NCBI RefSeq assembly: GCF_052425735.1
Contig: NC_135758.1
Location: forward strand, 12,648,001 to 12,712,000
Direction: 5' to 3'
Length of the DNA stretch: 64,000 bases
From: Oculina patagonica
Lineage: Eukaryota
This document shows, piece by piece, positions 997 to 44,493 of this stretch. The notes below the pieces were generated by a model. That model was not told the origin of the DNA and did not search any database. It was given only the letters and a program-made list of their open reading frames with translations. Numbering within the stretch: the stretch's first letter is position 1; each line of letters opens with the position of its first letter. The position numbers were made by a program, and so were the translations under genes.

Positions 997-3900
997 AATC
1001 ATCCAAGCCTTCCATTTATGGTAGTGGATCGCCTAAGACGATAGAAGCTCAAGATCGAAGTCCAATCACCTTGAACATTGGTGATAACGTGACAGCACTC
1101 ACCAATACAAGGATAGCTATTCACTGTCCGGCCAGCGGTGTACCAATACCTACTGTAACGTGGACAAAAGATGGTCAAGAAATCATCAGCGATGGCAGGT
1201 ACACCGTTCAGGATGATGGTCCGTTGTTGATCCGTGAAGCTGATGAAGAGGACACTGCTCGATACACGTGCACTGCAAACAATGTTGCTGGTAAAGATAG
1301 TGCATCAAGCACGGTGACGACTGTCAGTAAGTAGGCTAAACCCTCTCAAAATACTGTGTGGTAGTATCCATGTAATAAATATTGTAAAATTCATTAAATA
1401 TTCATGCGGGTGCAAACCAATCCGAGTACCATATTCAGATCACATGTACACAACTGTAAACCCCAATACAAATCATACAATAGAATTAACTTTTGATACA
1501 AACTTCTGCTCAGCTAATTAGTATTTATTAACTTTTGATACAGATCTGTACTGATTCGCATAACAATACTTTGTATTCAATTTATTGGTTTCATTTCACA
1601 AGTAGAATAAAATATTCGCGTCCGATCAGTATGGGCGTTTACAATCTCCCGCTCATATTTTATCTACTACATAAAGATGGTCAATTTTAAGCTCGGTAAA
1701 AAATAAAAATGAATTGTTCAATAATGACACGAGCATGGTACAAAGAAAAATCTGAGTCCGCAACGGGAATCGAACCCATGACCTCCCAGATACCGGTTTG
1801 GCGCTCTTACCAGCTGTGCTACGAGACTAGCCCAAATGGCCCAGCTCACAACGAGTCTCTTGTAGCTCAGTTGATTAGAGCGCCCAACCGGTATCTGTGG
1901 GAGGCCATGAGTTCGATTTCCGTCGGGGACTCAGATTTTTCTTTGTCCCATGCTCGTGTCATTGTTGAAGAATTCATCTTCAGTATCTATATAGTTTAAA
2001 CAGTAACTTTTAACAGTTATTTATATTTAACCTGAGAAAACTTACATTTAAATGTGTTTATCAGTGTTAATAAAGTACGGTGACAAAAAACATCATTAAA
2101 TCTATTTATTTTCACAGAGCCCACCAAACCAAAGATAGAAGTACCTAGGCCTGGACGAGATATTCCCGTTGGCGATGGTAGTCCAGTGACGATGAACGTT
2201 GGTGATAACGTGACAGCAGCTTCAAACACTATCATCACCATCAGGTGTCCAGTTAGTGGAATACCAACACCATCCGTTACCTGGGAGAAAGAAGGAGTGC
2301 TACTTCTAGACCAAGAGAGGGTTTCTGTTAGAGTGGACTCTTTAGTAATAAGAGGAGCAGAAGTAGAAGATAGCGCAAAGTACACTTGTAGGGTCTCAAG
2401 TCTGGCCGGAATGGATAAGCTTTCTTCTGTCATCAAGATAATTGGTTAGTGATACACTGGTTTACTACCTTCCGAACTGTAACCAGACCTTTGCCATAGG
2501 CGGGGCAAGATCTTGCTAGGGGGTTCTGGGGGCATGCCTTCCAGAAAATTTTGGAATCCAGAATCTCCGAAGCTGAAGCATTTTTGATGGCGTATTTCGT
2601 GGGAACAAAATCAATCTTGTTCAACTGGGGATTGTTTCCCAACAAAACATATGAAAACAAATCTAGGCGAGGCAAGCGCCTCGTCTTGCCTCTTGCTAGT
2701 TTCAGCCCTGGTCCTAGCGTTGGAAATAAGTTGTTTAACAGTATTTGTTCACTTCCGTTGAAAGGTCCCTCAAAACCAAAGTTTAACATCTCTGCTACAC
2801 CGAAGACGATAGAAGCTCAAGACCGAAGTCCCATTACTCTGACCATTGGTGATAACGTGACAGCACTCACCAATACAAGCATTACCATTCAGTGTCCCAC
2901 CAGCGGCGTACCAACACCAACTGTCACGTGGACAAAAGATGGTCAAGAAATAACCAATGATGGCAGGTACACCGTTCAGGATGATGGTTCATTGCTGATC
3001 AGTGAAGCTGACGAAGAAGACAGTGCTCGATACACGTGCACTGCAGTCAGTGTTGCTGGTGAAGATAGTGTATCAAGCACGGTACAGGTCGTTGGTAAGT
3101 AGGTGAAAGTCTTATGTGTGAAGACCGGATTAGGAAAATCTAGAATCCTAACCTATACCAAAGTGATGGCAAAATTAATATTTTCAATTTAACATAATTG
3201 TCTACAAGAATAATTAAATCTTGTGTTGGATGATTGGTTTAATCTACGCTTTCGTTAGTTCCAGCTATTGTTCCAGAAATCGTGCTGCTAAAATCCAAGG
3301 TTAAAAAAATTATCACGGTAAAATTATCACGATAGTCTAAAAGCTAGGTACAAAATTTGCGAAAAGCGCAAAAAATATGCGCTAAAGTAACGAAAAATAA
3401 CCCAAACTTATCGTAATGCACACAGAGCCCAAGAAACCAATGATCAAGGTCCCTGATACGAAACGAGAGATTCCCGTTGGTGATGGCAGTCCAGTGGCTA
3501 TGAACGTTGGTGATAACGTGACAGCAGCTTCAAACACCACCATCACCATCAGGTGTCCAGTTAGTGGAGTACCAACACCGTCTGTGTCCTGGAAGATGGA
3601 GGGCGTCCAAATTACTGAAGGAGTCAGGTTTTCCATTACTGCTGATAACAGTCTGGTTCTCAAAGGACCGGGTATAGAAGACAGCGCCAAGTATACTTGT
3701 AGTGTTCAAAGCGAGTTTGGAAAAGATGATACTTCTTCTGTTGTGACGATAGTAGGTAAGTGCTAATTCATAGTCCATTCAAGATACTGGGAGTTGGATT
3801 AAGGTAAAGGGAAAAAAGTTTTAATGTAGACGATTTGGCTTCCTTAATAATCGCTTGGGTATGCTCTCGCAACTCTGAAACAGACACATTTTGTCTGAGA

Positions 3901-6900
3901 AAGCTTTAACTTGGGTCAACATTAAGCTAAGGTACTTAAAAGTAATTCGCGTTGATGTCGAAAATTCAAGGAGATATCCCTCAACCCTCAAGCGTTTGGG
4001 AAACGCTGTGGCCAAATAGTTAGCGCGATGGACCCGGGTCGAGCGATCCGGAGTCGAGCCCCAGCTGTGATCACAACGTTGTGTTCTTAAGCAAAATACT
4101 TTACTCTCTTAGTCTCATAGTCCCTCTTTCCACCCAGGTGTCCGGCGAATGAATTTAATGCTGGGGTTTACCCTGTGATAGACTATATCCCACCCAGCGG
4201 TGGGGGGGGGGGGGGGGGGGGGCAGAAATAACCCTAGTCGCTTAGTACTAAGGAAACTGGGATTAACACCAACCTGATGCGCCACTATGCCCGAACGAAT
4301 ACATTACCAAATGTCGAAAATGGATGTTTGATTAACAACCACCTTTTTCTATGATAGAACCCTCCCCGCCTGCCGTAAATAGTCCTGATAAGCCAAAGAC
4401 GATAGATGCCCAAAACCAAAGTCCAATCACCATGACGATTGGTGATAACGTGACAGGACTTACCAATACAAGCATCACCATTAAGTGTCCTACAAGTGGC
4501 GTACCTACACCTACTATCACGTGGACAAAAGATGGTCAAGTCATCTCTAGTGGTGGCAGGTACACAGTTCAGGATGATGGTTCATTGCTGATCAGTGAAG
4601 CTGACGAAGAAGACAGTGCTCGATACACGTGCACTGCAGTCAGTGTTGCTGGTGAAGATAGTGTATCAAGCACGGTACAGGTCGTTGGTAAGTAGGTGAA
4701 AGTCTTATGTGTGAAGACCGGATTAGGAAAATCTAGAATCCTAACCTATACCAAAGTGATGGCAAAATTAATATTTTCAATTTAACATAATTGTCTACAA
4801 GAATAATTAAATCTTGTGTTGGATGATTGGTTTAATCTACGCTTTCGTTAGTTCCAGCTATTGTTCCAGAAATCGTGCTGCTAAAATCCAAGGTTAAAAA
4901 AATTATCACGGTAAAATTATCACGATAGTCTAAAAGCTAGGTACAAAATTTGCGAAAAGCGCAAAAAATATGCGCTAAAGTAACGAAAAATAACCCAAAC
5001 TCGTAATGCACACAGAGCCCAAGAAACCAATGATCAAGGTCCCTGATACGAAACGAGAGATTCCCGTTGGTGATGGCAGTCCAGTGGCTATGAACGTTGG
5101 TGATAACGTGACAGCAGCTTCAAACACCACCATCACCATCAGGTGTCCAGTTAGTGGAGTACCAACACCGTCTGTGTCCTGGAAGATGGAGGGCGTCCAA
5201 ATTACTGAAGGAGTCAGGTTTTCCATTACTGCTGATAACAGTCTGGTTCTCAAAGGACCGGGTATAGAAGACAGCGCCAAGTATACTTGTAGTGTTCAAA
5301 GCGAGTTTGGAAAAGATGATACTTCTTCTGTTGTGACGATAGTAGGTAAGTGCTAATTCATAGTCCATTCAAGATACTGGGAGTTGGATTAAGGTAAAGG
5401 GAAAAAAAAGTTTTAATGTAGACGATTTGGCTTCCTTAATAATCGCTTGGGTATGCTCTCGCAACTCTGAAACAGACACATTTTGTCTGAGAAAGCTTTA
5501 ACTTGGGTCAACATTAAGCTAAGGTACTTAAAAGTAATTCGCGTTGATGTCGAAAATTCAAGGAGATATCCCTCAACCCTCAAGCGTTTGGGAAACGCTG
5601 TGGCCAAATAGTTAGCGCGATGGACCCGGGTCGAGCGATCCGGAGTCGAGCCCCAGCTGTGATCACAACGTTGTGTTCTTAAGCAAAATACTTTACTCTC
5701 TTAGTCTCATAGTCCCTCTTTCCACCCAGGTGTCCGGCGAATGAATTTAATGCTGGGGTTTACCCTGTGATAGACTATATCCCACCCAGCGGTGGGGGGG
5801 GGGGGGGGGGGGCAGAAATAACCCTAGTCGCTTAGTACTAAGGAAACTGGGATTAACATCAACCTGATGCGCCACTATGCCCGAACGAATACATTACCAA
5901 ATGTCGAAAATGGATGTTTGATTAACAACCACCTTTTTCTATGATAGAACCCTCCCCGCCTGCCGTAAATAGTCCTGATAAGCCAAAGACGATAGATGCC
6001 CAAAACCAAAGTCCAATCACCATGACGATTGGTGATAACGTGACAGGACTTACCAATACAAGCATCACCATTAAGTGTCCTACAAGTGGCGTACCTACAC
6101 CTACTATCACGTGGACAAAAGATGGTCAAGTCATCTCTAGTGGTGGCAGGTACACAGTTCAGGATGATGGTTCATTGCTGATCAGTGAAGCTGATGGAGA
6201 AGACAATGCTCGATACACTTGCACTGCAGATAGTGTTGGTGGTAAAGACAGCGCTTCAAGCACAGTAACGATTATTGGTAAGTAGTGGAACTCATACCAA
6301 GCGAAGAACGTGCCTTACAAATAAACTAATTTACTTGCTCTTTTTTAAATTGTGAACATAAGAACTTTCCTTTTTGTCGATGTTTCACTTGTGAATAGTG
6401 CGCTGCCCTTTAACATTAAAGCATTATCCACTCTCGCCGATTTATAAATAAAAAAATAAATAAAATAAATGGTGTCTATAGTGGTCATGCACTTAGCTTC
6501 ATATCTCTACGAGATAGCTAGTTTACAGGCACGCCACTGAAACAGAGGAAACAAATATTTTTAAATGAACATAACAAGGTTAAAAATCCCAACTGGCAGG
6601 AGGCAGATCAGTTTGGCTTTATAAAAGCGTGGTCGAGGATTTGAACTCGGGACAACCGAGAAACAAATCCAGCTAGTGGCCAAAACAGGTCTTGAACCGG
6701 GGACCTCCGGATTACAACACCAGCGCCCCAAACCACTCGGCCACGTTTGCCACCTTAAACCGGTCTTTTAACAAGACCGGTTTTCCATCTTACGATTTAA
6801 GACAAGGCAGTCAACTGTGCATGATTATTTTTCGCAGACCCCGTCAAGCCGGTGATCGAGGTTCCTAAAACCGGACGAAAGATTCCCGTTGGCGATGGCA

Positions 6901-9900
6901 GTCCAGTGACTATGAACGTTGGTGATAACGTGACAGCAGCATCAAACACTACCATCACCATCAGGTGTCCAGTTAGTGGAGTACCAACACCATCTGTTAC
7001 CTGGGAGAAAGATGGAGCACATATTACTCAAGGAAGGACTCTTTTCGTCACAACTGACAATTCTTTAGTCATAAAAAAGGCAGATGCTGATGGCAGTGCA
7101 AAATACACTTGTAGCATTCAAAGCGAGTTTGGGAAAGATGACATTTCATCCGTTGTCAAGATAATCGGTAAGTGCAGTTAGTGCTTATAACGTTTCATTT
7201 TTGAGGTGGCTCCTGCACCAGGCTACTAGCTACAGAATATTATACTCAGTCCGTTGTCATTTCGTCGCCCGTTACGTGTAGTGCCTGTATTGCTGCTGTT
7301 GATGTACAAAACACAGTTAAATGTCTGTTGGGTAGAAAATTTGCTTCAAGACAAGAAGAGTATATTTTTCATGATTTGCCGCATTTGCTTCCAAAGTGAC
7401 ATAAACTGGCAGCCAGAAATCAAGTTAATATTAAGAGATTTACACATCGAATTCTGCTCATCCTCAGACTTTCAGTGTCTTAGTGTCTCATTTGGCTTTC
7501 TTTAATGTTAATGCGTGGTACGCACGTGGCCCCATGGGGAAATAGGACGACTTTTAACTTTGAACTCTGTTTTCGGCTGGTAATTAATTCATACCACCAC
7601 CTCGCGCGGAGCCAATTCAGTTTTGCAGTTTTATTAATTTTAAGACAAGTATCAACTAAAACAGCGTTAGGTGCCTTTTAGATGACAACAATTTCTTAAA
7701 CGTACTTTAAAAGTTCATCGTTTTACTCATAACTCTCACTGTACGTTATTTTTACAGGGCACAAGAAGCCTGTTATTATAATTTCTGACAGGCCAAAGAC
7801 AATAGAAGCTCAGGATCGAAGTCCCATTACTTTAACCATTGGTGATAACGTGACAGCACTTACAAATACAAGCATTACCATTCAGTGTAACACCAGCGGC
7901 GTACCAACTCCATCTGTTATGTGGACAAAAGATGGCCAGGAAATTCCCCGTGGTGGCAGATATAGAATTCAGGATGATGATTCATTGCTGATCAGTGAAG
8001 CTGAAGATGGAGACTCCGCTCAATACACGTGCACTGCAGACAGTGTTGCTGGTCAAGACAGGGCTTCAAGCACAGTTCAGATTGTCGGTAAGGTTTTCCT
8101 CGTCTTCTGTTTCGGAAACCAAATTGCTTTTGAATCACGCCGTCTTTGAAAACATGGTTTCGCGTTCGCTTCCGTTTTGACAACCTCAATAAATTGAGAA
8201 ACTATTAATACTTGTTCTCCTACGTAGACCCCATTAAGCCAGTTATAAAGCTGCCCGAACCTGCACAAAAGATCCCCGTTGGAGATGGCAGTCCCGTGAC
8301 TATGAACATTGGTGATAACGTGACAGCAGCTTCAAACACTACCATCACCATCAGGTGTGCAGTTAGTGGAGTACCAACACCAGCAGTTACCTGGCAGAAA
8401 GACGGAGTGCCTCTTATTTCCGGAGACAAAATTTCCATCATAAATAAAACCCGGTTGGTTATTCGAGAACCAGTAGGAGACGACAGTGGAAAATACACTT
8501 GCAGTGTTGAAAGCAAGTTCGGGAAGGACAGCTTGTCCTCCATAGTAAAAATACTGGGTAAGTGTCTAATCCCAAATTTTCGATGTTCTTGTAACGTAAT
8601 AAAAACGAGGCATCTGGATTCTTTCTTTTTTATGCGTAAATAGCTGTCTTTATCTTCCGTGGCGTAGCCATCCTTGTTAATTTTCAGTTTATTATTTCTT
8701 TGGTGCTTGTCTACGCTAAGGAAGTATTATTTTGAGGTTTCCTTAAATTTAATAATAATTTTGCACATCATGACAAAGTAACGAACTTAAAATATTGTTA
8801 CTAAGTTACTTAGAATTAATTTTCGTTGAATAGAAGAAAAAGTGACAGTGACACAGTTACGTTTTCAGTGTAAATTTCCAATTTTCTTTTCAAGTCATTC
8901 CCTTTATTTCACGGTAAAATGAACAAAACATTTTTGCATGGTCTTCTCAAATTCTTGGCAAACTACAAAGTTTCAATGTGTACCTTAATTACCTTAATGT
9001 AATGGGCGCCCTGTATTTCATGGTTTTACATAATGTTCTTCGCAGGGCCTTCTAAGCCTAAGGTAGAAACTTCAAAGAAACCAAAGACAGTAGAAGCTCA
9101 AGACCGAAGTCCTATTACCTTGACCATTGGTGATAACGTGACAGCACTAACCAATACAAGCATTACCATTCAGTGTCCCGCCAGCGGCGTACCAACACCG
9201 ACTGTCACGTGGACAAAAGATGGTCAAGAAATCCCTAATGATGGAAGGTACATAGTTCAGGATGATGGGTCATTGCTGATTATTGAAGCTGATGAAGAAG
9301 ACAGTGCTCGATACACGTGCACTGCAGACAATGTTGCTGGTCAAGATAGTGCAACAAGCACGGTGCAGATTGTTGGTAAGTCTTTTTATAGACTACTTTG
9401 ATATTTTTTGAATGCCCCACTCATTAGCAATCTTCACGTGTGGAGTTCACACTTTATGGAATATTGTAGCTCATTATGTCTTCTTGCACGGTGCCTTGAA
9501 TTGGACGCTTTAATCGTCTTATTACAGATGCATCGTATTAATTTCTGTCCCGTCATTTTACTCGCTAAATAAACCGGCATTATTTTGTTAAAAGTGACTA
9601 AATTTGTCGCCGAAACCATTGGCTCATAAATGCGATTTAGGTAGAAGGACAGGACTGGGTAGCCAGCGTAGGAGGCGTAAAACGGGAAGGGGGCAGTAGG
9701 TGGATTGAGGAAATTCGAGGAGTGAAAATATAGTTGGGGCTACCCTGCGACGCTAGGTATTGATGCTGCATGAATGAACACAAATGTGCAGTAAACAGGT
9801 TATTTTTATATCACACAGAGCCCGTTAAACCTGCGGTCGATGTCCCCAAGATTGGACAAAAGATTCCCGTTGGTGATGGCAGTCCAGTGACTATGAACGT

Positions 9901-10151
9901 TGGTGATAACGTGACAGCAGCTTCAAACACTACCATCACCATCAGGTGTCCAGTTAGTGGATTACCAACACCAGCTGTTACCTGGCATAAGGACGGTGTT
10001 CAAGTTATTGAACTGGAGAGAATAAGATTCACTGCCGATAACAACTCGTTAGTTATTGAGGGAGCGACGGCTGTGGACAGCGCAAAGTACACTTGCCGTG
10101 TTCAAAGTGTGTTTGGAGTGGACGAGTTGTCTTCTGCGGTGACTATTATAG
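997..10151 (+). CDS. Ig exons 1-12: first alternating A/B cluster (6 A-B pairs)
   Basis: Odd exons are A type (DRSPITLTIGDNVTALTNTSITIQCP..GVPTPTVTWTKDG). Even exons are B type (IPVGDGSPVTMNVGDNVTAASNTTITIRCPVSGVPTP). Exons are 327-333 nt with phase-1 introns. Confidence 0.92.
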
Positions 10152-32212: not shown

Positions 32213-32279
<67 letters not shown>

Positions 32280-35200
32280 TTGATACTTGGACTCACCTTT
32301 TTCATAGAAGATTAAAGGAATCCCACATAGGCATAAAAACCGTATTGAATTTCTTCTTGTTATTGTGGCCTGTAAGAATCTGATTTTCGCTCCTAAACGG
32401 TGAAAAGGGCGGTAAATGTGTCTGAAGCAAGGGTTGCGAACAGCAGTACCAACCACTTATGCTTTTTGTTTTTCAGAATCTACCAAACCTGTTGTTGAAG
32501 TTCCCGAAACTGGCCAAAAGATTCCCGTTGGCGATGGCAGTCCAGTGACTATGAACGTTGGTGATAACGTGACAGCAGCTTCAAACACTACCATCACCAT
32601 CAGGTGTCCAGTTAGTGGAGTACCAACACCATCCGTCACCTGGCAGAAAGACGGATTACAGATTACACCTGGAGATAAGTTCACAATCACAAGTGATAAC
32701 TCTTTGGTGATCAAAGCAGCAGCATCCCAAGATAGTGCAACATACACGTGCAGTGTTCGAAGCATGACTGGTACCGACAGTGCATCTTCAACAGTCCAAA
32801 TTGAAGGTCAGAGCTGTTAAGTAGTTCTTTCTTAGTTGACCTTAGATTAACACTTTATGTAACTTATTTTAGAAAAGAAAGAAAGAGACAGGAGGTAGGT
32901 GATATGTTGAAGCATATCAGAAAATCTGGAAACCTTTGAGGAGTATCTATCGCGAAAACAGGTCTTGATGACAAAGTTAGCTTCAGTTTTTCATAAATTG
33001 ACGATGTGAATAGAGTACTCTTGGCTGTTTGTTAACCTCTTCCATAACGTGCATAGTATTTTATCGTTTTCTTGTCCTCTTTTTATCCTGCTTTTTGTGA
33101 ACATTGGGCCTTCAAAGACAACATTCAGTAGAAAGATCGATACGTATGACAAGGTAGTCCATAACGCTGAAAAAGTGTACATTTCTTATACAACGGAGAG
33201 TTTGGCCATGGATGGAAACTTCAGGCCTCCACCTTAGATGTGCTATTCATCTTCGGTGTTATTTTCACTCCAAAACATTCACCCTTAATTAAGTTATTTA
33301 AAAGACCTCAACCATTCCTTTACCTTGACAGAACCTTCTAAACCAAACATCAATATCACTGACAAACCAATGACGATAAAAGCCAAAGACCAAAGTCCTA
33401 TCATCATGAACATTGGTGATAACGTGACGGCGTTTAGCAATACAAGTATTTCCATTCAGTGTCCTACCAGCGGCGTACCAACACCAACTGTCACGTGGAC
33501 AAAAGATGGACAGGAAATCCCCCCTGGGGGCAAGTATACAGTTCAGGATGATGGTTCATTGGTTATCCACGAGTCTAATGAGGAAGACACTGCTCGATAC
33601 ACGTGCACTGCAGACAGTGTTGCTGGTAAAGACAGCGCATCAAGTATGGTGCAGATTGCTGGTAAGCTGTGTTATGACCGGTTAACGATAATCGCAAACT
33701 CCATGAAAGAAAAAGCTCAAACCAAAGCAATTACCTTTAGTTTCGTGTCGGTTTGTACAAGTTTTAATTCTTATCGTTTTGTAAAGGATATCTATATTAA
33801 GCTGAAAGTCGCGTTATTGTTACAATTTGTGCACGAAGGAATTGTATTTTGATGGCAATTATTACATGTACAATTTTGCAACGAGAAACGTGTTTTCAAC
33901 CTTGTTTGTAGATTTGAAGAAGCCATCAATTCTAGTCCCAAAGCCAGGTCCAAAGCTACCAATTGGAGATGGCAGCACGGTCGTTACACCCGTCGGTAGC
34001 CAAATCACTGAGATTGCCTATGTCAGGATCTCGCTGACCTGTCCTACTGAAGGATCACCTCCTCCAAAAATCACTTGGAAAAAAGACGGCGAGGAGCTGC
34101 TATCCGGTGGTCAATATGAGATTGATGATGAAGGGACGTTGACGATACTAGAGGCAATAACAGAAGATACGGGCAAGTACACTTGTTCGGCTCAGAATGT
34201 AGCCGGTCTAGAGGAAGTGACGTCAACCATTGATATTCTAGGTATGTAACAGAGTAACCCGCTCATGCTCAAGACTTGTTAAGAACAATCCATGAGAACA
34301 CAGACACTTTTTAAAGATATCTTTGCTTAAAAAGACCAAACAATGTCATCTTTGACTTCAAATGTCCTGCAAAAACTGCACGTGCCCCAACAGTTTTGTC
34401 CAAGATAGTGGTTTGTGTAAAAAATATTACGCTGCGTCAAACTTTCCTGAATTTCCTGATAAAATGCGAAGCCACGAAAGGCCAAAACGTTCAAAGGAAA
34501 CTGTTTTAATTTAGTGTAATCTAACACTAGCTTTAATGAACCTTGGTCGATTTCCGCTAATTGTGGCATCGTTTGAGACCAATTAACACACACGAATTTA
34601 GCGTAACTAAAACTAAGGACTAGGATAACGTGGAAGTTTAACAATGAAAAAATAGGAAAAATTGAAGCTATTCCGCATAACTTAACCCAGTAGATAATTT
34701 CTCACCCAGGGAAGCCACGATTCTTTAGAAATAATTACCAGCTACTGAAACATCATTATGAATAATAGTTACTACTACAGGATAACAAGTCATGATAACC
34801 AGTTGTATTTAGGAATTTACTTTTTATATAGAAAATAAATACTAAGCCTTATTCCGTCTTTATACTAAACAACCCGGGTAAATAAGTATCATTCCTTTTT
34901 CAGAACCTCTGGAACCAATTATTCTACCACCAAAAGGTTCGATCATCTCAGATGACCAAAAGCGAATAACAGCAGGAGTGGGCTCAAAGATTGACACAGT
35001 AAAAGGTGTTACAATTATAATAACATGCAACGTGAATGGTGTTCCAATACCTGTGTTAAACTGGACCAAAGATGGTCAGGACATTTCACCAGACGAACGA
35101 GTGGTACTGCTGGAATCTAACGGAAGACTTGTTATCCGAGACTCTGTTGTTGAAGACAGTGGTAATTACACGTGTACTGCAAGCAGCAGGGCTGGACAGG

Positions 35201-38200
35201 CTAGCAGCACATCACCCGTGACAGTCTCAGGTAAGCCCGTAAGATTAGTGAACATTCCATTTTTGAGATACTCGAGACCGCGTCGAAAGGCGCCTACATG
35301 CCCACGCGAGGAGACATGTTGTAGGGATATGTCGCAGGGACAAAATCACACAAGGGCATGTTGCAGCAAAGGCATGTTGCAGCAATACGTCCCATTGTGA
35401 CAAAATGGGACGTATTGCTACAACGTGTCTCTGCTACAGTTTCTTGTGCGTACACGTTGTGATTTTGTCCCTGCTATATGTCCCTACAACATGTCCCCTG
35501 GGGTGTAGGCACCTTACGGTTAATTTCACAAACACCAGCAGGAAAGTGCCGAAGCATTAAATTAACCGACGCACAGTTGTAATCAGTTTATGGTCTTACT
35601 GCTGTTTGTGAATATTTTACTTCAGATTGAAGTAAACATTTTCCAGATGCATCTTTGTGTTTGTTTAAGAATACGTCCTTAGATGATTATTTGAAATGTT
35701 CGGGAGTTCTTGTCCTTCAGAAATGCAACTGAGGAAGGCTTGTTGTCTCGTCAAAGTGTTACACTCAGCGCAATAGAAAGGTTTTCAATTGAGAGTTGAA
35801 AGTAATCCGGAATTGCTTTACTTCTACAGTGCCCTGTTCTGTGATTGGTTTAACTTACTTAACCACTCAGATGCAAAACCCAAACCAATCGCTTATTGGC
35901 GTTGTGCGTTTTCCGACCGGAGTCAAGCGGGGAAAACGCACAACGCCAAAAGCGATTGGTTTGGGTTTTGCATCTGAGTGGTTAAGTAAGCGCTTGACTC
36001 CGGTCGCGTGTGTTTGCTTTGTGTTTGCGCAGATGCAAACCAGAAACCCTTATGGGTTTCTGGTTTGTATTAGTTAATCGGGATGTTTACGGTTGCTGTG
36101 CTTGTTTTGGTTGTACGAGACCCACGTAAAAACTGCTCTAATTGAAAGTCTAAAGCAGATTTTCTTTTAGCTCATAGCAAGCCCTCAATAGAGCGGTCCA
36201 CGAAGGCGGTGTCCTGGGATAAAGTAAGTCCTTTGACAGTCGCGGTCGGCAGCAGAGTGGAGATCATAAATGGCTCGTCAGTAACCTTGAGATGTAATTC
36301 CAGCGGTTTTCCTTCACCTAAGCTTACATGGACGCGTGGAATTGAAGCTATACCAGTTAATGACAAGTATGAGATCGGTGAACAGACGCTGACCATCCGC
36401 AATGTTCAGCATGCGGACGTGGATGAGTACACGTGTACGGCCACTAACCAGGCAGGACAAGATGCTGCCACTACTGAACTTGTTGTCAAAGGTGCGTCCC
36501 GTCTTTAAGAATACCTTACAGGACCTATATCTGAGTATGACACAGTATATAAAGTCATTCATCATCAGTCCTTCAGACACAGGCACATTTAATGTCACTG
36601 TAGGGCGATATTTGTCTACTTTGGTCTTGGTTCATTTTCTTATAGGCATACGGAAAATTTTGATCCGAAATTAAATTTAACCAGGCAAACTTGTAGAAAC
36701 AATAAATTGATAGCTATTGTACATTTGAGCATTTGTTGCTAGGTTAAAGAGGAATGTGCTGAATTTTGGGTGAGATGAGTATAAAAGGGTGGAATCGCGC
36801 TTATTACGTAAAGTGCAGTCAGGATTTATAGTTGATCCGTCGTACTCCGGATCAAGTAGTTTGCGATCAAGGACCTCCATTGTTATGAGGTATCCCCGCA
36901 TATTGTTTTCATTTAAGGTAGTGTTCTCTGAGCAGCTTCTTCGCTAGTCGTCCGCGGGGTGAATTACGCGTCAAGTCCACAACGAGAAAGAATGCCCCCA
37001 ACGCAAGACAGGAAGAAATGACAGATTGTCCCCGGCGAACACCACCCAAACAACTTGTCAGCGGGAGAAAAGGAGCGGTCACCAGCAAAGGCCCGCGACG
37101 GAGGGGGCCCGAATGGGAGGGCCGACCGAAAACAGAGAGATGTGTGTGCGAGAGACGAGCTCGGAGAGCGCCAGCACACGGCCCGGACCCGAAGGGGGAG
37201 GGGAGACGAGCCGAGGGACAAACCCCCCCCGCCGGAGACGGCCCGCCCGGAGAAGAGGTGGAGGAGGGAGAGAAGGGGGAGAGCAAGGAGAGAGGGAGAG
37301 GAGGAGAAGAGGGGCGAGCGGAGAAGAACCGGGGGGGAACCCCTCATACATTGTGCCCTTGCTGCTTTCTTGTGCAAGGCTTTACTCTCACGATGATCTC
37401 GACGACCCAGTTGTGTAAACAGGTACTAGCCAACTGTTTGTGTAATATTGACAAAATACTGAAAGGTGACTTGCGATTGACTAGAATACCATCCAAGTAG
37501 GATTTCCGTACTCTTAGTCACTTCACTGTACAGAAACTGGAGTTACGTACCAGCAGTGACGGTCACCTGACCTGTACGTAGACGTTCTCGTATTGATAGC
37601 CTTTCCATACTTTACCACAGGACCAGGAGGACCAGTTATCGTATCGCACAGCATAAACATCATCGACGTGGACAGCAGTAAACCTGTCGTTATCCCAATA
37701 GGTTCCAACTTGACCACTATAGTCAATGCAACTGTGATCATGACCTGCCCCACCAAGGGCTCCCCTCAACCTACCGTCACGTGGAAACATGAGGGGCGGT
37801 TTATAGTGCCAGGAGGGCACCAAAGGTACCAAATGAATGAGACAGCACTGATGATCAGAGGAGTACGGCTGGACGATGCAGGGCGATATGAGTGCACGGC
37901 ATTGAACATCTTTGGTCGTGATGCTGAGTCACTGTTACTCGCTGTCACAGGTAATATAGGCACATTCCGCTCGACAGTATTTCTTATACTGATTGACCTT
38001 AAGTTCGGGTCAAAATACCGTAATAACGAGGCAGTGTGTAAAGGAAATGAGTCGTGGCAGATTTTAAGGACGCTCACAGCGGTTTCCAGCACTTTTTAGA
38101 TCTTAAAGTGTATATGACGTGATGCACATTTGTGGTGCCAAGTTCCAAGAGCACTGCTTTAATAGTTTTAGAGATATTGTTTATTCAGTATTTTACCATT

Positions 38201-41200
38201 TTTTAGAGTCATATCTTATGACATCATCACTGATCTAATTTGCATAATACAAAAACGTCAATATCTCTGAAACGAAAAAAGATATTTCGAAAAGAAAAAC
38301 GCCATTCTTCTGTATTTCGAAAGGCCTTTCAAATAAGCAGAGAATATTTTTCATGTCATATACACTTTAAACTTTGTTAGGTTAGTTCAACGAATCTTAA
38401 AGAGTTGCTTCTATAATAATGATATCAACCAAATGTCCAATCATCGCTGAACAAGCTCGAGTTATCTTCATGACGTGACTGGTTGCCATGGCAACAGTAC
38501 AACCTGCTAAAAACGTCCCTTATTTTCCCTTTTAGCGCTTATACCTCAAAAACGAGTCCAGTGACTCCCATTTTTTATCACTGAATAATGATCAGCATAT
38601 TAAGATAGAGCTTTCTGCAAATTTAAAAAAAGATTCTCTTGAGCCGTTTCAGAGCCACCTTAAACTTTCGAAAAAAGCGTATTTCAAGCGTCTCTCCCCA
38701 TCTAAAGGTGTTCAAATAATTTCTTGAAATGAATGGTTGAAGTAAAGCAACTGAGTTTCGAGTGTCGTAAACTAGGTTACAGACAGGAATTTGGTTGTTT
38801 GGTTGTTCGTGTCGAGAAATGCCCATATAAAACAACAGAGCTATCCATTTCAACCCTGAAAAGCCCTTTACCATAGACACAGTTTCGTTCACTGTCACGC
38901 AAACCGAAGTTTAATTTCATGGCTGTCACACAAAATGCCAATGCATTTCTTTTTTTCAGTGCCTCCACTGATCAGCAATGTCAAAGGCACGTTTGAGATA
39001 ACAGACATCAGGGATCTTGTTTCCATAACAACCGGTGCCGTGGTCACCATTCCTAGGGGCGTGGCTGTCAGGATAAAGTGCATAGCAACGGGCGTCCCGC
39101 CCCCGAATATAACTTGGTATAGACAAGGAGAGAATTCCAAGGAAAGATCTTTACTAGTGCCCAATGGAAATCTGAAAGTAATGAAAGATAATTCACTCCA
39201 GATAACACGTACATTAGTGGTTGATGCTGCCTACTACACTTGTGTGGCAACTAACATCGCCGGCCAACATGAAGGAACAACGCATTTGAATATTGGAAGT
39301 AAGGAAATACAGAAACGTAATGTACTGTTTATGTGTGTGCTCTGTATTTTGCGTTTCTTGTAGATAAAACCAGTCTATCTAGTCTTTCTCGTTGTCTCGT
39401 TATTCAACAAAAGAAGGAACGAGCGAACAGAAGAGCAAAAGTATCACGGAGACAATGGAAAAAACGAAAGAGCCGAATAAGCTACCAACGAACGAACGAA
39501 CAAATGAACGAACGAACGAGTGAGTTATTCAATAAACGAACGAACGAGCGAACAGAAGAGCGAACGTTTCAGGAGACAACGGAAAAAAGAAAGAGCGAAT
39601 AAGTAATAAGAACGAAGAAGAAAGAAGAGAAGACAAACGAACGAACGAACGAATGAGTGAGCGAACGAAAGACAAACAGATTGTGCTGACCGACCGACCG
39701 ATCGACCGACCGACCGACTGTGCGACTTCAATTTTTTTGTTCACTAATTAATACATGAATTTAATAGATCATTTATTCATTTTACTTATCACATACGTTC
39801 CTCTCGTCTTAACTAAAGCTCCTCCAGAGATTCCGAGTTATTGGCGAGGAGTGAAATCTCGATTTAGTGACCACGCTCGGGACTTAAGAACAACAGTTGG
39901 TGCCCTGGCTACAGTCGTTAAAGGAGCAACCTTGAACATCAAATGTGCTGCCGTCGGTAACCCTAAACCAACGATCAAGTGGATTGTAGCTACTACAGGC
40001 CGACAGACACGTCACACTGTCTTGAATGACGGCACATTAGAAATACCAAACGCTGACCTTGATGATGAAGGAGAATACACTTGTATTGCTAACAACTCGT
40101 ATGGAACGCTCAATAGGACTACAACTGTCAGCATTTTAGGTAACAAGAGATAAGCTATTGCACAGTGAGTTCTGTACTACCATTCTTGTCCAAACCATAT
40201 TTAATTAAATTATTTTATTCGCGATAAAAGTGTTCGTCAATTACGGTATCCATTGGCTTACATATCAAACTTGGAACCAGAAATGAACTTCTTAAAAATA
40301 AATAAATCGATATTATTTAACGAGGGTTGCACATAACAGTCTTGCGACTGACAAACCTGTGGCCCCCGGATTCCCAAACGAATTGGAATTAAGAAGTGTT
40401 GGTTTTTGTGTAGGAAGGAAAACCGGAGAACCTGGAGAAAAACCCTCGAAGCAAGGACGAGAACCAACAATAAACTAAACCCACGTATGATGCCAGGACC
40501 CATGCCACATTGGTCGGAGGCGAGCGCTCTCAACACTGCGCCATCCCTGCTCCTCACCCCTTCACCTTTAAATTATGTGATATTCTTCTAGTTCAAACAA
40601 TAAACAAGTTTTTTTGTTAGGAAAATGGGGTGTGGCATATTGGTTATCGCGCTAAGTATTGACGTCAACATTTTTTTAATTTCTTTGCAGTTCCTCCCGA
40701 AATCCTAGAACGCCATTTTAGACATCTTTACAATAAAGAACAAATTGCGGGCCATGCAATGGCCCAGATGGAGGTAAAAAGAAGAACAATTTCTTCCATC
40801 ACCGTAGAAGAAGGTTATAATCTTATATTGATATGTACAGTGAGTGGAAAACCCAGACCGCATGTCACGTGGTCAAGAAACAGAGTTTTGATCAGGAATG
40901 ACACCAGACATTTGTTATTGCCGAACGGTGTGCTATTAGTGCGACATGTCCTCGTCAAGGAGTCGGGTCAGTACAAGTGTGTCGCTACAAACCTTGTTGG
41001 CAAAGATCAAGGAATTGTACAGGTTACTGTTAAAGATCAGGCAAAGGGTGAGTAGGTAACAAATTTTTGTGCATTCAAAGCCGCAGTGCCGGTGTCACCA
41101 TGTGCTTCTCTTTAGAATGGCAATTTGAAAAATAAATGGCATCAGAGCTCCACACGCACGAAACATTAGGGCAATCAGACAGACAGACGGACGGTTGTAT

Positions 41201-43235
41201 GGGAGGGACTTAAGGGATTTGCGGTATGGCAGTATTGGCCTTTTTTTTTTGTAAATAGGGTTTCGTTAATTATTTTTCAGCCGCCCCCACTTTTCAGATG
41301 TGAGTTCGTTATGAAATTTTCTAATATCAGGATAGACGGAGGCGGAAAATTTATACTTGCCTCAGTTGCTAAACTAAGATCAGCTAATAAATGATTTGAA
41401 GACTGTTAACCCCTCGTTATTATTTACTTACAGGTTATTGGAAAGTAACGGATTGGAGCAAGGCAAGTTTTTTTCTACTTTAAATCCATCGGTGACTGAT
41501 CAGTTATAAACTAAAACACGACAAAAAGCAACAGCAATTGTCTAGATAAGGAGCAGGAGTTAAAGATATCAACAAGTACCTTAAAATACTAACAAAACGT
41601 TTTTTTATTCAAATGACAACTCAGTCAAAGAAGTTTAAAAATCTCAACTAGTAGAGGGCTGGCCAGATAGCTATATACAAGACAACCAAACACAAATCCC
41701 TCCAGTGGCAGGAAGGAGGATTTTGAACCCGGGTCCGGGTTACAAGTCCAGCGTCCTAACCACTAGGCCACGCTGCCTTCACATTCAAACAGAACGTTTT
41801 GACACAATAGCAAGCACTTGCTCAATCTACTATCCTGTGATAAAATCAATACACAGACATGTTCAACTGTCATGTGACTGTTGTTTTTTTAGTGTGGTAA
41901 CTGCGTGACGCATCTCCGTGGATGGCAGGAACGACATATCAGCTGTATTGGTCCGGGTGGTATCGTTGTTAGTGACCTGCACTGTATCCACAAGCCTAAA
42001 CCAATCAAACGGCAGCGCTGTACTCACAGAGACTGTCACGTGATTTGGTCGCCTTCTGTTTGGTCAGCGGTAAGTAGAAACAAACAGAATTCGNNNNNNN
42101 NNNNNNNNNNNNNNNNNNNNNNNNNNNNNNNNNNNNNNNNNNNNNNNNNNNNNNNNNNNNNNNNNNNNNNNNNNNNNNNNNNNNNNNNNNNNNNNNNNNN
42201 NNNNNNNNNNNNNNNNNNNNNNNNNNNNNNNNNNNNNNNNNNNNNNNNNNNNNNNNNNNNNNNNNNNNNNNNNNNNNNNNNNNNNNNNNNNNNNNNNNNN
42301 NTGACTGACTGGCTGGCTGATTGATTGATTGATATTTTTCCTATTCTTAGTGTTCTCGATCGTGTGGGTTACATGGAATTAAACTACGGAATGTGAAATG
42401 CGTATTTGCAAAAAGCTTGAAACCGGCAAAAGGACAGTGTGGATGGCAGGAACCGCCTTCCTTACAGGAACCCTGTAACAGAAAATCGTGTACTAGAGGT
42501 TAGTAATTGTCAGTGATTTTGATTTCGGTCACATAAATTTTAGTTATTGTGTTAGTTTATGTCAGTCCACTGTATAATAAACCTTTATGCCAATATGCCA
42601 ATACGCTCTGTACTGCGCCTTTCTGCCAAAAGCTTAGGGGCGTACCATTATAAAGTAAATAAAGGTACCAAGCAAAACAATTCGTAAATTTGCGTTGAAA
42701 GTAAACCTTTGCTCCCTTTTCCCTGGGCGGGGACTTCCATGTGAAAGATCCCCAGGGGTACTCAGGTATATTTTGGGTGGGTATGTGCCGCCCGGGTCTC
42801 CAAAGTAGCACCCCGTTTTAGAAAGAATTTTCATTGAAAATGATACCCCGTTCTAGAAAAAGGTCAACCTTTTAACACCCGGTTTAGGCTGCTAGTAATT
42901 TTAAACTTTCATACGTTCGAAATGCTATACCCCGTTATAGAAATTGTCTCTAAAATGGATACCCCGTTCTAGATCGGGAGCCCAAAATCACGACCCCGTT
43001 TGGGCGGTACATACCTGGATAGGCATTTTGGGGGAGTATCCCCCAAGTTGTTTTTGAGGGATTTCACAAAACACCAGATTTACTAAGCTATTTTGCTGTT
43101 GCATCATTGTAAAACTTCTTTCTTTCTTTCTTCTCTCCAGCTAACTGCGTAGACAAAGTCAAATACTGCGATAAAGTCAAGAAAATTGGAATGTGTTCCG
43201 TCTATTCTCGCTGGTGTTGCAACACATGCCACTGA
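997..43235 (+). CDS. Giant multi-Ig ADAMTS-like (ADAMTSL1/3, punctin/MADD-4-type) extracellular protein, 5'-partial: 40 Ig(I-set) exons + 2 TSP1 + PLAC
   Basis: Exons read from AG/GT sites: 997-1326, 2118-2444, 2765-3094, 3426-3755, 4358-4687, 5016-5345, 5948-6277, 6838-7167, 7758-8087, 8228-8557, 9046-9375, 9819-10151, 11639-11959, 12222-12530, 13116-13418, 13817-14143, 14800-15123, 15705-16007, 16757-17086, 17674-17994, 18902-19228, 22671-22997, 23727-24059, 24829-25137, 25742-26068, 27121-27441, 28137-28463, 29251-29565, 30120-30449, 30632-30961, 31823-32152, 32477-32806, 33332-33661, 33912-34241, 34904-35230, 36171-36491, 37621-37950, 38960-39298, 39819-40139, 40691-41047, 41434-41462, 41893-42069, 42351-42498, 43141-43235. 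Each Ig exon has C-x3-G-x-P-x-P-x3-W...L-x-I...D-x-[GA]-x-Y-x-C or a close variant, and the frame is continuous to TGA at 43233-43235. An Ig-TSP1-TSP1-PLAC C-terminus is the ADAMTSL1/3 architecture. Confidence 0.88.
1709..1977. mobile_element. Palindromic element made of two head-to-head tRNA-derived units
   Basis: 1709-1828 is the imperfect reverse complement of 1854-1977. The right arm has a GAGTCTC/GGGACTC stem, an A-box-like TAGCTCAGTTGATTAGAGC and a B-box-like GAGTTCGATTTC. Confidence 0.75.
3998..4294 (+). mobile_element. tRNA-derived SINE family 1 (CORE-like central domain)
   Basis: tRNA-like head GTGGCC..AGTTAGCGCG...GAGTCGAGCCC, then TGTGTTCTT..GCAA.ATACTTTACTCTC...TCCACCCAGGTGT. Five related copies occur in the window. 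Confidence 0.75.
5590..5884 (+). mobile_element. SINE family 1 copy (duplicated with the tandem unit)
   Basis: Near identical to 3998-4294. Confidence 0.75.
6563..6752 (-). mobile_element. tRNA-derived SINE family 2
   Basis: Reverse tRNA-like head (CTTGAACCGGGGACCTCCGGATTACAA..CCAGCGCCC.AACCACTCGGCCACG). A related copy lies at 41630-41778. Confidence 0.7.
11311..11474. repeat. ~164-nt near-perfect hairpin
   Basis: ATACCTAATCGTACCTTTTTGGTACGCTTCGGCTG ... CAGCCGAAGCGTACCAAAAAGGTACGATTAGGTAT (35-bp perfect outer stem). Confidence 0.85.
11639..29565 (+). CDS. Ig exons 13-28: 16 mutually divergent Ig domains
   Basis: Exons of 303-333 nt with I-set motifs and canonical AG/GT phase-1 boundaries. 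The ORF-track peptides match. Confidence 0.92.
16062..16238. mobile_element. Tc1/pogo-type MITE
   Basis: TIR CAGTCAACTC...GAGTTGACTG, TA on the left, internal (T)GTCCGT.ATA repeats. A second copy lies at 31158-31679. Confidence 0.75.
18169..18299. repeat. Imperfect hairpin element
   Basis: AACAC...GACAGTGT..ATCGG..TATCC.AACACC.AGAA ... TTCTAGGTGTTTGGATA..CCGAT...ACACTGTC...GTGTT. Confidence 0.65.
19513..20779 (-). mobile_element. 5'-truncated L1/Tx1-like non-LTR retrotransposon (ORF2 C-terminus with zf-RVT, 3' UTR, poly-A)
   Basis: The ORF at 19978-20847 gives FQFKLIHNILNTN...TCPFWPDTEQSISHLFVHC...FW. AATAAA plus poly-A lies at 19513-19545 on the minus strand. TSD TTCTCCAT at 19505-19512 and 20780-20787. 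Confidence 0.85.
22019..22123. mobile_element. Short MITE
   Basis: 15-bp perfect TIR TAGCCTGCGTAGCAG/CTGCTACGCAGGCTA. Flanks TCAAACCCG / TCAAACCTG look like a TSD. Confidence 0.75.
23035..23156. mobile_element. Palindromic MITE
   Basis: 23-bp perfect TIR CCGATTCCCTCTATGGCGCGCGC plus further internal pairing. Confidence 0.75.
25293..25608. mobile_element. TTAA-targeting (Kolobok-like) MITE
   Basis: TTAA|AGGGGCTA...TAGCCCCT|TTAA. Confidence 0.65.
26654..27011. mobile_element. MITE-like inverted repeat
   Basis: TCAGATCGGAGTACAAGTACGACTT ... AAGTCGTACTCGTACTTCGATCTGA. Confidence 0.6.
27723..27890. mobile_element. MITE-like inverted repeat
   Basis: CGGTTGTTCAAA ... TTTGAACAACCG. Confidence 0.5.
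30120..34241 (+). CDS. Ig exons 29-34: second A/B cluster (A-B-A-B-A plus a divergent B-like exon)
   Basis: Same A and B cores as exons 1-12. Exon 34 keeps only LPIGDGS of the B signature. All are 330 nt. Confidence 0.92.
31158..31679. mobile_element. Tc1/pogo-type MITE (longer copy of the same family)
   Basis: TIR CAGTCAACTCT...AGAGTTGACTG followed by TA, with GTCCGTAATAGC repeats. Confidence 0.75.
32176..32276. repeat. (TGAT)n microsatellite
   Basis: About 25 tandem TGAT units with a few variants. Confidence 0.95.
34904..41047 (+). CDS. Ig exons 35-40: divergent C-terminal Ig domains
   Basis: Phase-1 exons of 321-357 nt with I-set motifs. Confidence 0.9.
35289..35513. mobile_element. Fold-back MITE (Harbinger-like ends)
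   Basis: GG.GCCTACA...TGTAGGC.CC termini. The arms pair along the whole length, with centre GCAATACGTCCCATT/AATGGGACGTATTGC. Confidence 0.7.
38107..38366. mobile_element. TTAA-targeting (Kolobok-like) MITE
   Basis: TTAA|AGTGTATATGAC.TGA...TCATGTCATATACACT|TTAA. Confidence 0.7.
39488..39719. repeat. Compound (GAAC)n / (GACC)n microsatellite
   Basis: Interrupted AACG runs followed by a GACC run. Confidence 0.85.
40310..40551 (-). mobile_element. V-SINE-like element
   Basis: Contains AAAACCGGAGAACCTGGAGAAAAACCC (reverse complement of the V-domain-like GGGTTTTTCTCC.GGTTCTCCGGTTT) and a tRNA-like head at 40510-40551. Confidence 0.65.
41434..43235 (+). CDS. Terminal exons: TSP1 - TSP1 - PLAC - stop
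   Basis: Spliced peptide GYWKVTDWSK|CGNC...GWQERHISC...C...KPIKRQRC...CHVIWSPSVWSA|CSRSCGLHGIKLRNVKC...PCNRKSCTR|ANCVDKVKYCDKVKKIGMCSVYSRWCCNTCH*. It has WxxxxW-S-x-C TSP1 motifs and a 6-Cys PLAC pattern ending CCxxC. Confidence 0.88.
41630..41778 (-). mobile_element. SINE family 2 copy
   Basis: TTTGAACCCGGGTCCGGGTTACAAGTCCAGCGTCCTAACCACTAGGCCACGCTGCCT, similar to 6563-6752. Confidence 0.7.
42094..42301. other. Assembly gap (208 N) inside a TSP1 intron
   Basis: Run of N bordered on the right by TGAC/TGAT repeats. Confidence 1.
42751..43043. mobile_element. MITE with GGGGTACTC...GAGTA.CCCCC termini
   Basis: Terminal inverted motif plus internal ACCCCGTT.TAGA repeats. A relative lies at 52251-52652. 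Confidence 0.6.
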
Positions 43236-43279
43236 AAATATATGCTGAATAATAAGACTACCTATTAAGAATTCACACA

Positions 43280-43285
43280 AATAAA
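43280..43285 (+). terminator. Candidate polyadenylation signal of the Ig/TSP1/PLAC gene
   Basis: AATAAA 45 nt after the stop codon, followed by a T-rich tract. Confidence 0.5.
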
Positions 43286-44361: not shown

Positions 44362-44493
44362 ACACTTAATGACTGATCCCTCGGGAAAACAGTTTATTTT
44401 GTTTCCCTCGAATCTCAATGTTTCCTTCGGCGAAACATTGAAATTCTCGGAAAACAAAATTAACTGTTTTCGTCAGGAACAGTCATTCAGTGT
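44362..44493. repeat. Hairpin element
   Basis: ACACT.AATGACTG...AAAACAGTT.ATTTTGTTT...TCAATGTTTC / GAAACATTGA...AAACAAAATTAACTGTTTT...CAGTCATT.AGTGT. Confidence 0.75.

Follow-up and report, generated by a model that had tools for sequence, protein, structure and literature searches.

A giant gene for a predicted secreted Ig-array protein with a TSP1-TSP1-PLAC end in the coral Oculina patagonica

Results

One giant gene occupies most of the window

The stretch of DNA analysed here (the window) comprises 64,000 nucleotides (nt) of the plus strand of contig NC_135758.1 (C1:12648001-12712000) in the 529-Mb assembly of the stony coral Oculina patagonica, with about 40% GC and a single run of N at 42094-42301. 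It carries exons 28-71, the last two thirds, of one plus-strand gene that extends from -33511 to 43235 in window coordinates (negative numbers lie upstream of the window) and encodes a long series of immunoglobulin (Ig) domains, two thrombospondin type 1 (TSP1) repeats and a PLAC domain. A stop-to-stop frame scan for the Ig signature C...W...Y.C identified 40 true Ig frames on the plus strand between 900 and 41052, plus one chance match. Each of these frames has an AG acceptor 107-143 nt ahead of its first Cys and a GT donor past its last strand, both in phase 1. When joined, the 40 exons (997-41047) are stop-free and sum to 13,059 nt, and the entire coding sequence in the window amounts to 13,508 nt or about 4,500 amino acids (aa). 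An initial choice of acceptors at 12237, 14806, 15720, 17680 and 39828, giving 13,008 nt, was dropped for the upstream sites 12222, 14800, 15705, 17674 and 39819 because these keep the invariant P..P.I start of the domain; the site at 39819 is also used in RNA-like contigs. Five sampled Ig exons match Pfam I-set with E values of 1e-13 to 4e-18.

Within the 100 kb examined upstream, 24 further intact phase-1 Ig exons lie between -27624 and -64, bringing the total to 64, each symmetrical in phase 1-1. The complete model has 71 coding exons across 76,747 bp (76.7 kb), with a coding sequence of 21,459 nt that contains no internal stop (Table 1). The domain order is signal peptide, 30-residue acidic linker, 64 I-set Ig domains, two ADAMTS-type TSP1 repeats and PLAC. 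The predicted protein of 7,152 aa has a mass of ~762 kDa before glycosylation, an isoelectric point of 5.1, 122 N-x-S/T sequons and disulfide-type Cys pairs throughout. A scan of the full-model sequence found the signal peptide to be its only strongly hydrophobic stretch, and R-x-[KR]-R occurs in it once, as RERR at residue 56.

These results can be set against the original prediction, which a model had made from the letters of the window. Its 40 Ig exons of 13,059 nt, followed by two TSP1 repeats and PLAC in about 4,500 aa, are all reproduced, the Pfam assignments (I-set, PF19030 twice and PF08686 once, the TSP1 and PLAC matches being above the curated cut-offs) agree with it, and it correctly placed the 5' end outside the window and saw no transmembrane segment. 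Its suggestion to look upstream for a signal peptide and for TSP1, Cys-rich and spacer domains yielded the signal peptide, in exons 1 and 2, and none of those three domain types ahead of the Ig array.

The N-terminus is conserved in other corals

Using the Ig1 exon as a query of protein collections returned exon-level orthologues with 60-79% identity in other assemblies, and three orthologous loci were aligned. This cross-species alignment of upstream DNA contains a conserved non-coding block at -34075 to -33724, likely a promoter or 5' untranslated region (UTR), followed by three short coding exons. The lengths modulo 3 and the phases of exons 1 and 2 are identical in two other corals (L020 and L022), and the ATG, the hydrophobic core, the QQE/GT donor and the RERR motif are kept across species. 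Exons 1-3 appear to encode a signal peptide, divided between two exons, and after it a short acidic linker with a conserved R-E-R-R site. A one-exon signal peptide candidate, MCSYLS... with a phase-1 end, was rejected, as the cross-species alignment showed it to be the wrong frame of the real exon 2.

No TSP1 motif was detected on either strand in the 100 kb upstream of the window. Blastx against hemicentin representatives gave no match between -37k and -27.7k, and the interval from the upstream galactosyltransferase gene to Ig1 contains nothing that codes for a hemicentin-like protein. That neighbour, a single-exon GT31 gene on the plus strand (-37645 to -36656), matches Pfam Galactosyl_T at E 2e-39 and Fringe more weakly, and lies directly ahead of the promoter region of the giant gene. 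Among the GT31 enzymes is the extender of O-fucose on TSP1 repeats; any bearing on the giant gene is speculation.

The 3' end is spliced into two ADAMTS-type TSP1 repeats and a PLAC domain

Ig64 is followed by a 29-nt micro-exon that leads from phase 1 to phase 0 and encodes G-YWKVTDWSK. The intron behind it (41463-41892) is of the GC-AG type, with its donor AAG/GCAAGT confirmed in spliced contigs; in the Tara coral orthologue described below, the codons past the micro-exon are V-S, suggesting an ordinary GT donor. PF19030 (TSP1_ADAMTS), with a cut-off of 23.8 bits, matches twice, the scores being 25.7 and 32.9 bits, and each repeat has six Cys once the micro-exon is counted. The classical TSP_1 Pfam model matches neither repeat. 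PF08686 (PLAC) scores 27.9 bits against a cut-off of 26.4, with the stop codon directly after it. Both TSP1 exons (41893-42069 and 42351-42498) are single copy in the genome.

We mapped Logan contigs of three runs from three studies, guessed to be RNA, to 38900-44500. The gene is transcribed: spliced joints are present at 39298>39819, 40139>40691, 41047>41434, 41462>41893, 42069>42351 and 42498>43141, and one contig of 704 nt runs from Ig64 through the micro-exon, both TSP1 exons and PLAC into the 3' UTR. An 841-nt contig (X1) continues unspliced from 43139 to 43626, and one of 2,031 nt takes in Ig61 and more, reaching 1.5 kb further upstream than 38957. No exon is skipped in the contigs of 1.7-2.0 kb, in which consecutive exons are joined, intron depth in these RNA-like runs is close to zero save over repeats, and in two of the runs the differences are spaced mostly at multiples of three. 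The assembly gap (42094-42301) lies within an intron whose donor (42069/GTAAGT) and acceptor (TTAG/42351) are both outside it, and the joint 42069>42351 occurs in three runs; the reading frame thus runs on unbroken, with no constitutive exon inside the gap. GACT/GATT simple repeats directly flank the 3' side of the gap and are probably why the assembly broke there.

Other repeats are found in the introns of the gene. One at 40209-40582 has very high depth in all RNA-like runs, with loose ends GGAATCGAACCCGG, and resembles a tRNA-derived short interspersed nuclear element; the reads of a polyA raw-read run (X23) land solely on this tRNA-like repeat and are uninformative on the gene. Simple repeats that translate as (TNER)n occur at 39321-39748 and upstream at -28373 to -28046.

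The Ig array combines unique and amplified domains

Five zones make up the array. Ig1-15 are unique, with 28-43% identity to their best paralogue; Ig16-36 (21 domains) alternate between types A and B, mostly 68-85% identical within a type; Ig37-52 (16 domains) are again unique; Ig53-58 form a second A/B cluster of six domains, of which Ig58 is a diverged B; and Ig59-64 are six unique domains. Only the 27 A/B-type domains look amplified when the sequences are compared. Within the first A/B array, the intervals 2800-4695 and 4393-6285 are 97.2% identical over 1,898 bp, introns included. This level of identity marks the ~1.59-kb tandem duplicate, which contains one A exon and one B exon with their introns (2800-6285), as recent. 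The copy number of this duplicate may differ between colonies, or may be miscounted in the assembly.

One extra upstream Ig exon (-5501 to -5135), between the adjacent A exons Ig16 and Ig17, has its halves in different frames. Judged by its position in the alternating array, it is probably a B exon that has been broken; it is either dead and has to be skipped, or the product of an indel error in the assembly.

An alignment of 39 exons defines an Ig module of ~109 residues in which P4, C43, W55 and C91 never vary, G28 hardly varies and 39 residues separate P4 from the first Cys. Each module thus exceeds a standard I-set domain by 10-20 residues, inserted between strands A and B. AlphaFold2, run on Ig27 with this alignment, gave a predicted local distance difference test score (pLDDT) of 94.7 across all 109 residues, with no disordered stretch and with extra strands at residues 2-6, 14-16, 23-27 and 29-33. 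Foldseek returned the I-set domains of Robo, Sidekick, neurofascin and titin, with template modelling (TM) scores of 0.70-0.77 on the query and 0.84 on the target. In this model the module is an enlarged I-set domain and not an Ig domain plus a floppy linker, and the extended N-terminal segment that had been noticed in the raw sequence is both real, as the near-invariance of G28 indicates, and ordered.

The array is old and its domains are colinear between corals

A search with the TSP1 exon found orthologues at 71-89% identity. Two Tara coral-metagenome scaffolds (L023 and L025) contain the entire 3' end exon for exon, preceded by at least 10 Ig exons; identity is 79-81% for Ig64, 74-75% for the first TSP1 repeat, 78% for the second and 84% for PLAC, and the micro-exon reads GYWEASEWSQ. 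From Ig64 to PLAC the nonsynonymous divergence (dN) is 0.11 and the synonymous divergence (dS) 1.7, at which synonymous sites are saturated, and the dN/dS of 0.07 reflects purifying selection.

To test orthology, BLAST was used to compare every Ig open reading frame of the foreign loci, from four other coral assemblies, with the 64 domains. One-to-one orthologues in colinear order, with 46-82% identity, exist for Ig1-9 in three loci and for Ig55-64 in the Tara scaffold, compared with 27-46% to paralogous unique-type domains. On this sequence comparison the domains keep their positional identity across species, as in titin or hemicentin. Colinear orthology, which includes the second A/B cluster, indicates that the array is older than a deep split among stony corals; together with the saturated dS it also indicates an old array and not a recent blow-up of an ADAMTSL gene.

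Domain content sets the gene apart from known families

Which known proteins does this gene resemble? Searching a type-A Ig exon against 1.84 billion representative proteins returned only hemicentin- and titin-like matches, at 27-39% identity. The giant gene's C-terminus is absent from the best 150 representatives in that search, which yielded no full-length orthologue. True hemicentins take the first four places among the database matches of the Ig module, and have a VWA_4 and GBD_Hemicentin head and a G2F and EGF_CA tail; in the one hemicentin tail among them where TSP_1 repeats showed, there are six.

Hemicentin-1/fibulin-6 (HIM-4 in C. elegans) is likewise a giant secreted matrix protein with a long unbroken I-set run followed by thrombospondin repeats. 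The giant gene differs in that it has no VWA_4 or GBD_Hemicentin head and no G2F, EGF or fibulin tail, carries ADAMTS-type instead of TSP_1 repeats, has 64 instead of ~40-48 Ig domains, and ends in PLAC. Matches to GBD_Hemicentin lie on C10, on C2 and at C1:41.83-41.85 Mb, and those to G2F at C1:41.76-41.83 Mb and on C13, so that the hemicentin-type GBD and G2F domains on C1 are 29 Mb from the giant gene.

The punctins ADAMTSL1 and ADAMTSL3, and MADD-4 of C. elegans, are also secreted and carry ADAMTS-type TSP1 repeats and Ig domains together with a C-terminal PLAC domain. They have a handful of Ig domains. The giant gene has 64 and retains from this family the PF19030 repeats and the C-terminal PLAC, whereas the defining cassette of N-terminal TSP1, Cys-rich and spacer domains is missing. 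The ADAMTS spacer (PF05986) has seven hits genome-wide, none in the giant gene; the closest to it, at window coordinate 84.9k, is part of another gene downstream. Papilin/lacunin, a basement-membrane protein, shares Ig domains and a C-terminal PLAC; the giant gene has no papilin cassette, with neither a spacer nor N-terminal TSP1 repeats, and no Kunitz-like exon among the 71 modelled (the Kunitz motif scans covered the downstream flank at 64-124 kb and the two other PLAC loci). Titin, twitchin and obscurin are similar in size, in having one Ig per module, in positional domain identity and in the I-set fold. They are, however, intracellular proteins with FN3 and kinase domains and without a signal peptide, whereas the giant gene encodes a conserved signal-peptide-like N-terminus, sequons and disulfide-type Cys pairs, and I-set, TSP1 and PLAC are the only domains found in it.

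A canonical ADAMTSL gene lies ~35 kb downstream on the plus strand (~78,000-90,600), with TSP_1, a weak Cys-rich match, the spacer, PF19030 about six times and PLAC. It shares the cut point of its TSP1 exons, after W...WSx in phase 0, with the giant gene, and one of its exons is among only two weak paralogue matches in the genome, at 33% identity. A recent duplication of the TSP1-PLAC end from this neighbour was considered and rejected, the exons being single copy and only 33% identical; any origin shared with the neighbour is therefore ancient. The 3' end was most likely recruited long ago from an ADAMTSL-type gene, to judge from these sequence comparisons. A separate minus-strand gene on C13 (36,186,001-36,216,000) encodes TSP1, a spacer, five further TSP1 repeats, a pair of Ig domains that share one open frame, and PLAC, and is likely the coral's true ADAMTSL-with-Ig gene, of the punctin/papilin type.

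Table 1. Features of the giant gene in window coordinates. All Ig exons were placed by the open-frame scan together with phase-1 splice sites; A or B type comes from sequence comparison between domains.
Feature	Position	Strand	Evidence
Exon 1, MRQYLRISPTVF, ends phase 2	-33511 to -33474	+	cross-species alignment
Exon 2, R-IPTCVLIYLVVFSCVISCSGQQE, ends phase 0	-33324 to -33255	+	cross-species alignment
Exon 3, TEDPHSFTTLLQVLEDDDVRERRAITSEQD, ends phase 1	-30009 to -29919	+	cross-species alignment
Ig25 exon, type A, phase 1-1	997..1326	+	Pfam I-set E 4e-18
Ig26 exon, type B	2118..2444	+	Pfam I-set; type comparison
Ig27 exon, type A	2765..3094	+	folded exon: AlphaFold pLDDT 94.7, I-set fold; module alignment
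Ig28 exon, type B	3426..3755	+	protein identical to Ig30
Ig29 exon, type A	4358..4687	+	splice phase; type comparison
Ig30 exon, type B	5016..5345	+	inside 1.6-kb tandem duplicate, 97% identical
Ig31 exon, type A	5948..6277	+	splice phase; type comparison
Ig32 exon, type B	6838..7167	+	splice phase; type comparison
Ig33 exon, type A	7758..8087	+	splice phase; type comparison
Ig34 exon, type B	8228..8557	+	splice phase; type comparison
Ig35 exon, type A	9046..9375	+	splice phase; type comparison
Ig36 exon, type B, closes first A/B array	9819..10151	+	splice phase; type comparison
Ig37 exon, unique	11639..11959	+	splice phase; Pfam; type comparison
Ig38 exon, unique	12222..12530	+	acceptor 12222 keeps invariant P..P.I start
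Ig39 exon	13116..13418	+	splice phase; module alignment
Ig40 exon	13817..14143	+	splice phase; module alignment
Ig41 exon	14800..15123	+	upstream acceptor; module alignment
Ig42 exon	15705..16007	+	upstream acceptor; module alignment
Ig43 exon	16757..17086	+	splice phase; module alignment
Ig44 exon	17674..17994	+	upstream acceptor; module alignment
Ig45 exon	18902..19228	+	splice phase; module alignment
Ig46 exon	22671..22997	+	splice phase; module alignment
Ig47 exon	23727..24059	+	splice phase; module alignment
Ig48 exon	24829..25137	+	splice phase; module alignment
Ig49 exon	25742..26068	+	splice phase; module alignment
Ig50 exon	27121..27441	+	splice phase; module alignment
Ig51 exon	28137..28463	+	splice phase; module alignment
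Ig52 exon	29251..29565	+	splice phase; module alignment
Ig53 exon, type A, opens second A/B cluster	30120..30449	+	splice phase; type comparison
Ig54 exon, type B	30632..30961	+	splice phase; type comparison
Ig55 exon, type A	31823..32152	+	orthologue in Tara scaffold L025
Ig56 exon, type B	32477..32806	+	75% orthologue in L025
Ig57 exon, type A	33332..33661	+	type comparison; cross-coral orthology
Ig58 exon, diverged type B	33912..34241	+	74% orthologue in L025
Ig59 exon	34904..35230	+	cross-coral orthology
Ig60 exon	36171..36491	+	cross-coral orthology
Ig61 exon	37621..37950	+	orthology; 3' end is loose end of contigs reaching 38957
Ig62 exon	38960..39298	+	spliced contigs, joint 39298>39819 in 3 runs
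Ig63 exon	39819..40139	+	joints 39298>39819 and 40139>40691
Ig64 exon, last Ig	40691..41047	+	Pfam I-set; contig joints; orthologue in L023/L025
Micro-exon (29 nt), W...WS start of TSP1 repeat 1	41434..41462	+	joints in 3 runs; orthologue in L023/L025
Rest of TSP1 repeat 1 and WSPSVWSA (W...WS) start of repeat 2, phase 0-0	41893..42069	+	PF19030 25.7 bits; 74-75% orthologue
Assembly gap, intronic	42094..42301	.	joint 42069>42351 skips gap in 3 runs
Rest of TSP1 repeat 2, phase-1 end	42351..42498	+	PF19030 32.9 bits; contig joints; single copy
PLAC exon with stop codon	43141..43235	+	PF08686 27.9 bits; joint 42498>43141; 84% orthologue
3' UTR, at least to 43626	43236..43626	+	841-nt contig unspliced 43139 to 43626

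Discussion

Taken together, we consider it probable, at roughly three chances in four, that the locus is one single gene for a secreted Ig-array matrix protein of ~7,152 aa, a hemicentin-like tether that stands outside the ADAMTSL, papilin and hemicentin families. Several points weigh against this interpretation. The whole 21.5-kb message is spanned by no single read or contig, and skipping of the symmetrical Ig exons could yield much shorter isoforms, as could internal starts. The RNA status of the three runs is a guess, though their intron-less spliced contigs argue strongly for RNA. Exon 3 was recovered in L022 only, that is, in two of the three species compared, and the signal peptide and furin-type site are read from sequence. 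An automatic annotation of the gene likely exists already, and a named homologue is possible. Finally, no entry for I-set, PLAC or PF19030 was found in the supplementary text of a study of the O. patagonica and S. pistillata skeletal proteomes, a weak negative that gives no support to the skeletal role raised in the original prediction (PMC9532382).

Could the locus mostly yield several shorter products instead, through exon skipping, internal promoters or separate genes? Any subset of the 64 symmetrical exons can be skipped in frame, the frameshifted B-type pseudo-exon at -5501 to -5135 needs skipping unless it is an assembly error, and the check by RNA-like contigs covers the last three Ig exons and the C-terminus only. 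Against this, neither an in-frame stop nor a divergent exon phase occurs anywhere in the array, the 1.7-2.0 kb contigs join consecutive exons unskipped, and a positional orthologue for each domain across species suggests that each is used; we therefore regard fragmentation of the locus into short products as unlikely. Still more doubtful is a coral hemicentin orthologue, or a truncated hemicentin paralogue, despite Ig modules that best match bona fide hemicentins (25-36% identity over at least 40 domains) and an arrangement of a long Ig array then thrombospondin repeats, as in hemicentin. The N-terminus has no VWA_4 or GBD_Hemicentin, the repeats are PF19030 and not PF00090, the stop codon right after PLAC leaves the protein without G2F, EGF or fibulin modules, loci with GBD_Hemicentin and G2F lie in other parts of the genome (C1:41.83-41.85 Mb, C10 and C2), and none of the 150 best representatives has this C-terminus, all of which makes this reading very improbable.

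The original prediction favoured an ADAMTS-like protein, a true punctin-type member with an Ig region expanded about tenfold in this lineage. Its C-terminal kinship stands: both TSP1 repeats match only PF19030, the protein ends in PLAC, and the neighbour ~35 kb downstream shares the TSP1 exon cut site and supplies a weak paralogue match. Family membership does not follow from this kinship, as the N-terminal cassette is missing and its place is taken by a signal peptide, linker and Ig1 that are conserved across species, with no TSP1 motif within 100 kb upstream and spacers in other genes only. On C13 the genome also has a punctin/papilin-like gene of its own, which encodes two Ig domains and PLAC. 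As for the expansion, the colinearity of the array in distant corals means that it did not expand recently in this lineage; Ig1-9 and Ig55-64 pair one-to-one with those of other corals, and the dS of the C-terminal end is 1.7. We consider membership of the ADAMTSL family quite unlikely, and return to a single secreted Ig-array protein as the preferred interpretation.

How might such a protein work? It would be secreted and deposited in the mesoglea or basement membrane, and the RERR site suggests that a short propeptide may be removed. Its 64 rigid modules could form a heavily N-glycosylated beads-on-a-string filament. An Ig domain spans about 4 nm, which would give an extended length of ~0.26-0.28 µm; a filament of at least 160 nm had been estimated from the 40 domains of the window, and the array proves larger than that. 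The strongly constrained TSP1-TSP1-PLAC end may act as a matrix anchor, by analogy with ADAMTSL and papilin, and the positionally conserved Ig domains may offer a spacer and binding surface in the manner of hemicentin linking tissues. By this analogy the protein probably has a hemicentin-like role as an extracellular tether, with hemicentin as its most likely functional analogue.

We found no protein described in the literature that unites a signal peptide with an Ig array, an ADAMTS-type repeat pair and PLAC, annotated proteomes being outside this search. A survey of cnidarian thrombospondin repeats mentions novel architectures with immunoglobulin domains and describes no such giant (PMC5446238), and none is mentioned in the main text of a Nematostella matrisome paper (PMC12549020). 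The 'hemicentin-1' of the skeletal proteome is a VWA/TSP_1/F5-8C protein (PMC9532382), and coral expression studies report many 'hemicentin' paralogues, by name only, as adhesion, calicoblast or biomineralisation markers (PMC13581030). So far as found, the gene is an undescribed combination within giant secreted Ig-array matrix proteins, conserved among stony corals. At least one coral Ig giant thus differs from hemicentin in head and tail, and name-based annotation would mis-assign it.

More tentatively, the gene may be the first known member of an unrecognised class of giant matrix proteins that extends across corals, and perhaps across anthozoans, a class in which a positionally conserved 64-Ig array with a TSP1-TSP1-PLAC end captured from ADAMTSL evolved independently as an analogue of hemicentin. 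If so, it might serve mesoglea or basement-membrane junctions as a principal long-range tether or elastic element, and protein length may be polymorphic, the A/B sub-array still altering its copy number. The gene pairs deep positional conservation of Ig domains with ongoing tandem amplification. Its exon-level model, with a 29-nt micro-exon, a GC-AG intron and an intronic gap, would be difficult for automatic gene callers to obtain, and gives work on cnidarian matrix mechanics a concrete target.

Other features of the window

Between the giant gene and its ADAMTSL neighbour lies another plus-strand gene (47042-50196) with an EGF exon at 47624-47974 (Pfam EGF E 4e-8); its Cys-containing open frames at 47042-47401 and 49546-50196 have no Pfam match. 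The intron ahead of the first Ig exon in the window contains a repeat of ~630 bp (274-900) with at least 40 chromosomal copies at 87-99% identity, which indicates a young interspersed element. Two GC-rich stretches, at 36922-37497 in the intron between Ig60 and Ig61 and at 63521-63920, have a local GC content of 0.46-0.49 and are open in all three frames, and their translations are of low complexity, rich in Arg, Gly, Glu and Pro.

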